Made by a program: the position numbers and the translations under genes
Shown here: in pieces, positions 4,713 through 9,303 of the stretch
How the letters are laid out: each line of letters begins with the position of its first letter
How positions within the stretch are numbered: position 1 is the first letter of the stretch
Assembly: GCA_047495785.1 (NCBI GenBank)
Contig: JBLDXI010000011.1
Location: forward strand, 558,001 to 622,000
DNA: 64,000 bases
Reading direction: 5' to 3'
Source: Lepidodermella squamata
Lineage: Eukaryota > Animalia > Gastrotricha
Notes under the pieces: generated by a model
Told to the model about the DNA's origin: nothing
What the model saw: the letters and a program-made list of their open reading frames with translations, nothing else
Database searches by the model: none

Positions 4713-5541
4713 TTAACGCGGTGGGGGCTCTTCTCTTTTTAGCCAAGACCCCTTTTCAGACCTTTTGACCAACCGGGGACGATCAGAATGAGGATAAAAT
4801 TATATCTACTGGGGTCTGGGGTTCCTGTTGGCACTTGGTACAGATCACGGGCGGAATTTTCTGAAAACCCTATAAATAAGGAAACATTCATGCATGATAA
4901 TGACTAAAATGGTATTATTCATACAAGAGTTTGCCTTGGATTACACCAGTTGGGCTTTTTCACGATTCTACGTGTTTTTCCAGCCAACTCGCATAAGAAA
5001 GTGACATCCGCGGCGGGACAGACTTCCGACCAAGCTCGCCAGGGAGGCGTCCTCGGCATTACTTTCAAGCACTGCTTATGGCTCATAAAATATTCATGCC
5101 ATTCATTTATTTGCTGTATTGTGGCTTTACCGATTTTCTCAGAATCATTTCTGTTGGTTTTAATTTGCTCTCAAATTTACATGTTTAACCACTAACTTCT
5201 TTAATAAATGGAAAATATAAAAGAATTTCGTTGTAGCCGTTTGTTCTTTCCATCATTTTAGCTTTCTTAACTCCGAGATTTCTATAGCTTTCAGTCCCTG
5301 TTTTCCATTTCGCAAGATGAGTAGCGAAATTACATAGTCACCGTTTATTATGACAAGCGGCTATTTTTGAAAGCGTCAAAACCATATCAGTGCGTAGGTT
5401 GGAAAGAACCCTTAGCCCGCGCTAGCTTCTTATCATCGTAATTAACGACTATAAACATTGGTGCTCAAATTATCTACTTACGTTAACTTGCATAGCCATA
5501 GCATCCTATTAATTTTGAGAAAATTCGTCAGCTGCTTGGAG

Positions 5542-8500
5542 ATGGCATCGCCCTACTCGTTCCGATCTATAGCTGAGTTCACGGACTTTACCCGTTTGTC
5601 GAGTAACTCCGAGAAACTCCTCCGAGGCATGTGACGTAGATAGGACGCCGCACTAAGAGGTTTTCGGACACGAAAAACTGAAGTCAGACTAATAAGGGGC
5701 AAAGTTCATCTTTTCAAATTTAATAAGATGAATCATCTCATTATTTTCCACCCAAATATTTCTCTTGCTATTTCTGTGTAATTTTGAGCAGATGGTGCCA
5801 TTTCATCAGCTTAGTTCATCTTTAAAGATGCATCTCCTCTTTGTTTCGTCTCGGAAACCGCGCCAAATCACTACTTTTTGCGATCTTCGAAACTTGAACT
5901 AATTAATTTTAAATTTTTAAATTTTAATTATTAAACAATTTCAAAATGAGCCCCACCATTTTATTTTTTTTAAGCTGCAAATTATTCTGAATATTAATGA
6001 GGAAAAAAGTGAACACGTCTTCTTGTCTTCTGGCGTGCTCTGAGTGCGGCGTCCTATCTACGTCACATGCTCCGAGGTGGATATTCATGCCAACGCAATG
6101 AGTGCTATCCTTACGAGTTTGTCATTAAAAAAGCTAATTTGACCAAGCTGCAGGAGGAATTCGAGAAAGACTTTGAAACAATCGCTCGACTTCTCCGCGA
6201 AAAAGTAAGGAATGTGCATATCTTCGACATGGCATCGTTTATGCTGATTTATCCTATTTTCAGGATTCGATGATGGTAAAAATTAACCATCCAAATATTG
6301 TCCGAGTATTTGGCACGTTCGAAGGTTCGGAAATCATTCTCTCACGTAAAACTCATCCACTCGATTTGTTTTAGAGGCATACCCGGTTAGTGACGTTGCT
6401 TGTTATAAGCACTCCATGCACCATTTGGTGATGGAGTTGTGCGGCGGTGGGAGTTTCGAAACTCTGATCAAAGCTGGAGGTGAGCCGATTCGCGAAGTTA
6501 GGCTTCAAAGTTGGTCTCGCCAGCTCGTTTCGGCTTTGCATTATCTACACAAGCGAGACATGGTACATGGCAACATTAGGCCAAGCAATATTCTGCTGTC
6601 GAAGAACCAAGGCACTGTGAAACTGGGAGAACTAGGAATAATGGAAACCTTTAATCCGTAAAGCCTCCAGTTTTGATTTTTAATCTAACTTCCATCCGTA
6701 ATATTTCAGAAAATCAAAAACGAGTTCTCTATCGCAAGAAATGCGTGACTATTGGCCACCTGAAGTATGGAATGGTGCGCGAATGTCACAAGCTGGTGAT
6801 GTCTGGTCGCTGGGTGTTACGCTTTACGAACTCGCAAACTGCATAAGACCAGTATGACATTGACAAAACCACAAAACCCTAAAAGTTTAGCATAATTTAT
6901 TTTACGTAGTTCGACCTAATGCACAAGGTCATGACGTAAGTCAAATTCAGTCTTACTGCTGCAAAGTGAAAAGTGTATCTTGGTGAAATTATTTCACATT
7001 TCGAGATAAGAAATAGTTCACTGTGCCTATAGCGCCGCCCGGCGGAGGGCCTATTATAAATAAAACTAACACATGCTGAGATAAGAAAGAGTTGGTGGCC
7101 ATGGCCCGTGGCATATATCCCAAGTCTATACGCGAAAACCGATAGACGAAATACCTAGAATGATTTAGTTTTCGAACTTAGTTATGGCTCGCGAATAAAC
7201 ACTCTTAACTTTGCAGCAGTCACCTGAAATAACTCAATCTCGAATCTGCCTTGTTTAGACGCGAAGCTCAGCCTTTCGACGAGTCTCGTGGTTATTCAAC
7301 ATATTTCCAAGAATTTGTAATGTCCATGCTAACTAAAAATGCCGAGGTTCGACCGAGAACTGATCAGCTTTTAAACGACAGATTTTTTCTAAACCAACCG
7401 ACGAAAAATGTGAGATTTTGCCAGATCGAAATGAGTATTACGACGGTGCTTTCTTCCTGTTTTTTTCAGGCGGATTCCTCCACAACACCTCAACCAGATG
7501 AAAAGACTGTTCAGGTATTGAATAAACTAACGCCGAGCAAACTGATGCGTTGATTTCACTTGACAGGAGTTATTTGACTGCGTGTTGGCGAAAGATGAGT
7601 CGAAATTAGTGGAGCTGCTGATGAACAGGGAGCTCGGTCTTAGCTCTTACTGCAGAAACGAATATGGGGCTACATTACTGCATATAGCTGCTATCAAAGG
7701 CTACAACGACATTGTGGAGATCCTTGTCAGGCAATTCAACGCCAATATTGAGGCAGCCCTTGAAAATGGCACTACACCATTGTACATCGCCGCCAACAAA
7801 GGCCAAATTGAGGTTGTGAAGACATTGGCTGGCGAGTTCAACGCAAACGTTGAGGCAGCTGATAATGAGGGACGAACACCCTTGTACGTCGCCGCCCTCC
7901 AAGGCCACGTCGAAGTTGTGAAGTCACTGGCTGGCCAATTTAACGCTAATGTTGAGTCAGCAGATAAAGATGGCTGCACACCATTGTACATTGCAGCCCT
8001 CCAGGGCCATGGCGAGGTGGTGAAAATACTTGCTGGGCAGTACAGCGCCAATGTAGAGGCAGCCGATGAAGTTGGACGTTCAACACTGTTCGTCGCCGCC
8101 TTGGAAGGCCACGTCGAGGTTGTGAAGACACTGGTTGAAAGGTTCAAAGCGAATGTTGAGGCGACCAACATAAATGGTGCTACACCATTGTTCATCGCCG
8201 CCAAGAATGGACAAGTCGAAGTTGTAAAGATTCTGGCTGGCCAGTTTAACGCCAACGTAGAGGCAGCCATTGACGATGGCGCCACACCGTTGTACATCGC
8301 CGCTGAGAATGGTCATGTCGAAGTTGTGGAAACACTAGCTGGCCAGTTCAGCGCCAATGTAGAAGCGGAAACCAAATTGGGTGCTACACCGTTGCACGCC
8401 GCCGCCTTTCAAGGCCACGTCGAGGTTGTGAAGGCACTGGCTGGTAGGTTTAAGGCAAATGTGGAGGCAGCCATTAACGATGGCGCTACGCCGTTGTACA

Positions 8501-9303
8501 TCGCTGCCGAGAATGGTCATGTCGAGGTTGTGGAGATACTAGCTGGCCAGTTCAACGCCAATGTAGAAGCCGCAGCCATATTGGGTGCTACACCATTGCA
8601 CGTCGCCGCTGTCAAAGGCCACGCCGAGATAGTGAAGACACTGGCTGGTAAGTTTAAAGCCAACGTTGAGGTGGTCAATGCGAATGGCGCTACACCACTG
8701 TACTTCGCCGCTTGTTTTGGCCACGTCGAAACTGTGAAGACGCTGGCTGGCGAGTTCAGCGCAAACGTCGAGGCTGCCTACAGAGATGGCACTAGGCCTA
8801 TACACGTTGCCGCCATCCAAGGTCACATTGAGGTGGTTAAGACATTGGCTGGTCAGTTCGGGGCCAATGTTGAGGCAGCCGATGGAGATGGTCGGACAGC
8901 ATTGTTTATCGCTGCAGAAAAAGGCCACGCCGAGGTGGTGCAGACACTCGCTTCCCAGTTTAAAGCGAATGTTGAGGCGGCCAATAAATGGGGCGCTACG
9001 CCACTGTACGTCGCCGCCGGCTTCGGCCACGCCGACTTGGTGAGGATACTGGCTAGCCAGTTTGGTGCCAATGTTGAGGCAAGGGGTGAAGATGGCCTCA
9101 GACCGTTAATGGCTGCTGCTTTATTCGGTCGACACGTAGTAGTTGATATGCTGATCAATGAATTTCGAGCTGGTGTCAACGCGGCCTGCAGTGAAGGACA
9201 TACCGCGCTGCATTATGCTAATAAGCATAACTGCTGTTTGCCTGTTGCAGACGAGGACAAGCGGAAAGTAATTGAAGTCCTGAAAAAGGCGAATGCTAAA
9301 TAA
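5542..9303 (+). CDS. NEK-like pseudokinase-ankyrin fusion (copy 2, 15 ANK units); exon 1 interrupted by a MITE
   Basis: MASPYSFRS...KLLRG|GYSC, HPNIVRVFG, HGNIRPSN instead of HRD, GELG instead of DFG, YWPPE, DVWSLG; same intron positions as copy 1; open ANK exon ~7567-9303. Confidence 0.75.
5628..6069. mobile_element. 442-bp MITE with ~32-bp TIRs and 8-bp TSD (hAT- or P-like)
   Basis: TSD CTCCGAGG at 5620-5627 and 6070-6077; TIR CATGTGACGTAGATAGGACGCCGCACT / AGTGCGGCGTCCTATCTACGTCACATG. Confidence 0.93.

Follow-up and report, generated by a model that had tools for sequence, protein, structure and literature searches.

Can a coding exon that has received a transposon still be read? Exon 1 of a gene in a 64,000-nucleotide stretch of DNA from Lepidodermella squamata (the window) is split by a short element whose edges could permit its exact removal from RNA as an intron, and whose last bases supply a start codon in frame with the rest of the exon. 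The question raised by this locus is whether the gene is rescued by either of these routes or has been disrupted.

On either side of the insert stands CTCCGAGG (5620-5627 and 6070-6077), a perfect 8-bp direct repeat that is its target-site duplication. The element between the two copies occupies 5628-6069 (442 bp) and both begins and ends with CATG. Its inverted arms, 5627-5659 and 6038-6070, are 33 nt long and 97% complementary, with 32 nt counted within the element. The longest ATG-initiated ORF inside it has 36 codons, as befits a non-coding MITE, and an Rfam scan of 5400-7600 gave no matches. The features of the insert are as follows.

5620-5627, no strand: target-site duplication, left copy, CTCCGAGG (direct-repeat reading)
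5628-6069, + strand: non-autonomous P-superfamily element (MITE), 442 bp (family copies, ends, P-type relatives)
5628-5659, + strand: left terminal inverted repeat, beginning with CATG (inverted-repeat search; stem partner in the RNA fold)
5632-5634, + strand: native-frame stop codon, TGA, within the left terminal repeat (translation)
6038-6069, - strand: right terminal inverted repeat, finishing with CATG (inverted-repeat search; RNA fold)
6067-6069, + strand: in-frame ATG from the terminal CATG of the element, with 7 ATGs upstream (translation)
6070-6077, no strand: target-site duplication, right copy (direct-repeat reading)
5627-6076, + strand: hypothetical 450-nt GC-AG intron proposed in the first-pass annotation (geometry only; weak signals, donor in an RNA stem)

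Read from the ATG at 5542, the native frame yields 29 native residues and one more (...EKLLRGM) before it meets the TGA at 5632-5634. The ATG at 6067 is in frame with the downstream exon and reads MLRGGYSC..., and deletion of either 5627-6076 (450 bp, GC...AG) or 5628-6077 restores ...KLLRG-GYSC. The first-pass annotation had described this arrangement, and its description holds: the arms, the duplication and the uninterrupted exons of the paralogs show that a coding exon here holds a transposon with its 8-bp duplication, the geometry of exact removal of 5627-6076 to KLLRG-GYSC is correct, and translation recovers both the native stop at 5632-5634 and the in-frame ATG at 6067 (MLRGGYSC).

The gene that carries the insert is otherwise complete. 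Its exons were searched one by one and were joined by script only to check the open frame.

5542-5627, + strand: exon 1 before the insert, MASPYSF...EKLLRG, start codon at 5542 (conserved in 11 paralogs)
6078-6204, + strand: exon 1 after the insert, GYSC...LLREK, with the glycine-loop and VAIK-like region (paralogs, translation)
6264-6324, 6375-6657, 6710-6851, 6910-6935, 7259-7409 and 7470-7514, + strand: further exons (open, GT-AG introns)
7567-9303, + strand: last exon, ankyrin array (open; the remaining gene spans 6264-9303)

Gene copies related to this one are numerous, and the exon piece that follows the insert has 31 matches elsewhere in the genome. In 11 of the 11 closest paralogs, exon 1 (M-A/T-SPYSF...EKL, then LR.AY.C...) runs uninterrupted through the insertion point, so the insert interrupts true coding sequence rather than marking the site of an old intron. 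For exon 3 there is a Pkinase match (E=1e-15). Within the kinase domain (6377-6655), HGN replaces HRD and GELG replaces DFG, and these motifs predict a pseudokinase, that is, a dead kinase. When the element and one copy of the duplication are removed, the eight exons form 885 codons without a stop, separated by seven introns that are all GT-AG (59, 50, 52, 58, 323, 60 and 52 nt). The MITE is thus the only lesion in the gene. Because this frame is intact despite a nearest paralog that is only about 80% identical, the copy appears to have been under constraint until recently. Outside the genome, searches of a protein collection, with fragments of 150-315 aa outside the search, returned only generic ankyrin proteins for the ankyrin exon (at most 53% identity) and zero candidates for the open frame of exon 1.

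Two other features of the gene are worth recording. Intron 5 (6936-7258) is 323 nt long, against 50-60 nt elsewhere, and holds an insert with imperfect 32-nt inverted arms at 6955-6986 and 7189-7220. The core of that insert (7019-7082; 55-62 bp) contains the motif TATAAATA and a GC-rich near-palindrome and recurs across the genome as a dispersed repeat, in at least 40 copies at 89-100% identity; the arms are not repeated, and there is no Rfam match. At the other end of the gene, all paralogs carry an acceptor-like, T-rich TTTTCAG about 10 nt before the start codon (5520-5541 in the window), and the upstream frame of every copy reads ...(F)SCLE-M, with a weaker acceptor (score -3.8) in copy 1. 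This pattern suggests that the 5' end of the mRNA may be set by a 3' splice site, either that of a spliced leader or that of a 5'-UTR intron.

The element itself belongs to a family. Genome searches covered the assembly from which the window is taken (121.2 Mb in 151 contigs), which holds at least 40 related copies of the 442-bp element. Its 22-nt terminal pattern has 157 matches at two or fewer mismatches, versus 0 for a reversed control. These two counts mark the insert as a genuine transposon, as opposed to a repeat that arose by chance. Of the 23 complete (two-ended) copies, 16 are bordered by perfect 8-bp duplications, each with its own sequence. The window copy is 100% identical over 442 bp to the copies at C54:86749 and C43:137727, and the three occupy unrelated sites, each with a different duplication; the remaining copies are 77-95% identical. 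Complete identity at three unrelated sites indicates that the family moved very recently and that the window insertion is among its youngest. To judge from these sequences, the MITE family is active now or was so very recently. An allelic contig with the empty site was sought in the assembly, and both flanks matched paralogs only, at 80% identity or less.

Where does the mobility of this non-coding element come from? A coding element with exactly the ends of the MITE was sought in the genome, and none was found. A sister terminal repeat is present, with 20 of 22 bases the same as in the repeat of the MITE and 70 matches in the genome, and it bounds elements of 4405, 4733 and 5763 bp on three contigs.

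C25:65184-69588: sister-repeat P-type element, 4405 bp (perfect 8-bp duplication)
C46:547609-552341: sister-repeat P-type element, 4733 bp (perfect 8-bp duplication)
C29:3635535-3641297: sister-repeat P-type element, 5763 bp (flanks match only at a one-base offset)

The ORFs of the 4733- and 5763-bp elements, the two that were tested, match PF12017 (the P-transposase HTH), PF21787 (the RNase H N-terminal part) and PF21788 (the GTP-binding insertion) above the cut-offs of Pfam. A genome-wide count gives 26 matches to PF21787, the P-type RNase H domain. Over its first 120 bp the MITE is 74-78% identical to the subterminal region of the sister-repeat coding elements. Since the sister repeat bounds P-transposase elements, the MITE is a non-autonomous member of a P-superfamily lineage, and this assignment to the P superfamily, made from ends and relatives, is new here. 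As in that superfamily, of which the Drosophila P element is the type, the target duplication is 8 bp, the terminal repeats are about 31-32 nt long and start with CATG, and a short non-coding form exists beside relatives with nearly the same ends, whose transposase has the P-type HTH, RNase H and GTP-binding insertion domains. The MITE departs from this picture in that its repeat and that of the coding elements found disagree at 2 of 22 bases, its interior is unrelated to theirs past about 120 bp, and its host is a gastrotrich-like invertebrate.

Each of the two sister-repeat elements examined has two adjacent long ORFs, one of 419-473 codons and the other of 426-437 codons, and the break between them divides the transposase, with the RNase H domain on one side and the GTP-binding insertion domain on the other. 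The sister-repeat elements may be intact and may be the source of transposase for the MITEs. Several other candidates for an autonomous partner were set aside. Pairs of the MITE's own repeat 1.3-2.2 kb apart contain no transposase, a P-transposase fragment on contig C10, which lies 5 kb from a solitary end, lacks a matching left end, and nine solitary perfect ends are truncated copies or copies broken by other elements. A separate P-type family of 4.28 kb has CATAGAC...GTCTATG ends and 8-bp duplications (read for two copies). It is represented by C9:3972231-3976517 and by copies on contigs C23 and C31; comparison of three of its four copies gave 99.9% identity, and this family, too, is recently active.

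The fate of the interrupted gene depends on what happens to its transcript. If the spliceosome were to remove 5627-6076 exactly, the gene would go on making its full-length protein. The GC donor would be formed by the final G of the duplication and the first C of the element, the AG would lie within the second duplication, and the 32-bp stem of the terminal repeats might juxtapose the two ends. Several features fit such an event. The span 5627-6076 is the only one of nine registers that gives GY...AG, the exact GC-AG pair scores best among the 26 in-frame splice options enumerated, and the host gene already splices a 323-nt intron holding another insert. The RNA fold pairs the two ends of the element. 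The same fold tells against the donor, which is buried in the 32-bp stem: the terminal repeats form a long stem that includes it (MFE -145.6 kcal/mol, z = -6.7). Splice sites were scored with simple position matrices built from 39 introns, partly paralogous and of the same gene family, and the scores are indicative only. The donor context GAG/GCATGT, minus the GC, scores 0.9. This ranks at the 94th percentile among all GT sites of the window but at the 8th among the 39 real donors, every one of which is GT and not the proposed GC.

The acceptor is weak. The first-pass annotation had conceded as much of its GAG, and the scores bear this out, since the site falls below all 39 real family acceptors (-10.5, where real acceptors average 8.8 and go down to -8.6) and stands at the 47th percentile of random AGs. 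The base at -3 is a G, which occurs in 0 of the 39 real sites (C in 28, T in 8 and A in 3), and there is no T-rich tract. Better acceptors inside the element, ending at 5727 (score 3.2) and 5974 (score 2.0), would compete with it, and both leave stop codons. The six other introns of the host gene are only 50-60 nt long. Chance alone would produce the geometry in 5-10% of insertions, and it is not over-represented in the family. Exact splicing that preserves the protein is therefore unlikely.

The absence of a family excess follows from a comparison of insertion sites. Exact GY-AG removal is possible for 5.4% of random 8-mers and for 9.7% of 8-mers in the coding sequence of the host gene, and among the 16 copies with perfect duplications, the exact geometry on either strand occurs in 2, versus about 1.7 expected. 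The element itself contributes only the C of the GC; the remainder comes from a target that ends in AGG, and the element carries no splice site of its own. The family has no fixed register between the element ends or duplication and the GY...AG sites. A preference for AG/G targets was sought in the 16 perfect-duplication copies and none was seen, the targets being heterogeneous. Insertion into genes was assessed by ORFs, with the 23 insertion sites set against local control sites 250-1000 bp away at the same loci. A spanning ORF of at least 150 codons is present at 8.7% (2/23) of insertion sites versus 26.6% of controls (Fisher p=0.055), and the median spanning ORF is 91 codons at insertion sites versus 95 at controls (Mann-Whitney p=0.22).

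The first-pass annotation had likened the element to an introner and had suggested a check for enrichment in exons at AG/G sites; neither an enrichment in long ORFs nor an AG/G preference is seen, and with the geometry at chance and the acceptor weak, the introner-like function is not upheld. It had also named depletion of family copies from exons as an outcome that would speak against its idea. The counts lean that way, but with 23 sites and p=0.055 they fall short of significance. Only one other copy is clearly exonic. It lies at C15:2335198-2335639, is 93% identical and older, and has the same orientation relative to its gene. Its host ORF has 326 codons, is rich in membrane-spanning segments, and remains open in both halves; the ORF upstream of it matches ANF_receptor weakly, and the host looks like a class-C-GPCR-type gene. 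This copy was considered as a fixed "intron" and, because it has no exact GY-AG geometry (the nearest option deletes 5 nt), was rejected as support for an introner.

Transposons in exons are known to be partly spliced, which produces leaky alleles. Examples are Ds and dSpm in the wx and adh1 genes of maize and the P and 412 elements of Drosophila, where splicing is modified by su(s). In these cases splicing has been shown experimentally and is usually imprecise, with use of cryptic sites inside the ends of the element. The window MITE resembles them as an exonic cut-and-paste element with donor- and acceptor-like sequences at or near its ends. It differs in that its internal cryptic acceptors would leave stop codons and in that its own splicing is hypothetical.

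The term introner denotes a family whose members really are introns, spread over many unrelated genes, with element ends and splice sites in one constant register (PMC9860276). Described families include those that take both splice sites from the target (the Florenciella type) and those with many GC donors (PMC9860276). Like the introners of Micromonas, Aureococcus, Symbiodinium and Florenciella, the window MITE is a short inverted-end DNA transposon with a duplication in a coding exon, and the duplication could supply splice bases and leave the mRNA unchanged, as in Florenciella, where both sites also come from the target. Unlike them, it belongs to a family with 2 of 23 copies in long ORFs and with splice geometry at chance, and its removal as an intron is hypothetical. 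MITE-derived non-canonical introns whose inverted ends pair are also described in Fritillaria and in euglenids (PMC11282704). The inverted ends that pair in RNA and the duplication-like repeats at the junctions are shared with the introns of Fritillaria borealis and the euglenids (PMC11282704). Those organisms have thousands of such introns and an adapted spliceosome or other machinery, whereas every one of the 39 introns sampled here is of the ordinary short GT-AG kind.

The strongest version of the splicing idea is that of an intron caught at birth, in which an active P-type MITE landed on a ...AGG target, its stem would aid exact GC-AG removal, the gene would stay functional, and P-type MITEs would be a source of new introns in the phylum. 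If true, it would be a rare direct observation of the birth of an intron from a DNA transposon in an animal. The evidence on splice signals and on the family makes it very unlikely.

Rescue could also come at translation, from the ATG at 6067, which would give a protein without its first 27 residues. This ATG is in frame, and the ORF then runs on to its end. An unspliced full-length transcript has seven earlier ATGs, so a start at 6067 would need a transcript that begins in the last ~70 nt of the element. Such a transcript would have to start in the 3' part of the element, either from a promoter in the element or from a trans-spliced leader joined at a cryptic acceptor. There is a fair acceptor at 5974, and the acceptor-like TTTTCAG before the start codon in all the paralogs is in keeping with a leader. 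However, a transcript from 5975 still holds the ATG at 5997, whose -3 base is an A where that of the ATG at 6067 is a C, and the 34-codon ORF that starts at 5997 overlaps 6067. The loss of residues would delete part of the first beta-strand ahead of the glycine loop. Moreover, any element that ends in CATG gives an outward ATG, and one time in three it will be in frame. Use of this start codon is quite unlikely. Finally, the insertion might be absent from the animal and be a chimera of whole-genome amplification or of assembly. The published Lepidodermella squamata assembly was made from multiple-displacement-amplified DNA of tiny input, a method that makes chimeric reads (PMC11660948). Against this, a perfect 8-bp duplication around complete inverted ends is the signature of transposition, and 15 other copies are alike; the duplication and the complete ends thus argue for transposition and make a chimera extremely improbable.

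What remains is disruption of one gene copy, and this is the likely reading: a young loss-of-function insertion into one copy of a fast-turnover pseudokinase-ankyrin family. A non-autonomous P-type element would have been moved by a P transposase supplied in trans from another genomic locus. By a very recent cut-and-paste event it would have entered codon 28/29 of exon 1, in the glycine-loop region of one pseudokinase-ankyrin copy. Insertion generated the usual 8-bp duplication, and the native frame now ends two codons into the element. This one copy would be left as a null or strongly reduced allele, with no dedicated mechanism of rescue. Such a loss would be tolerated because the gene family has many paralogs and turns over quickly. 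This account starts from direct observations: how the element is built, the family and the P-type relatives it has, its place in an exon, its young age, and a gene that is otherwise intact. From these we infer a disrupted copy without rescue at the level of RNA or translation. The intact downstream ORF is expected of a young insertion and fits equally well a tolerated insertion that is spliced. Two further points count against disruption: the top score of the exact GC-AG pair among the 26 options, and the older exonic copy on C15, whose host ORF is open in both halves.

Disruption of one copy would be an ordinary event, in which a young MITE knocks out one member of a redundant and fast-evolving gene family. 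The locus offers a clean, dated insertion with the geometry for exact excision. It also documents current or very recent activity of P-superfamily MITEs, together with their likely transposase-bearing relatives, in a little-studied animal phylum.
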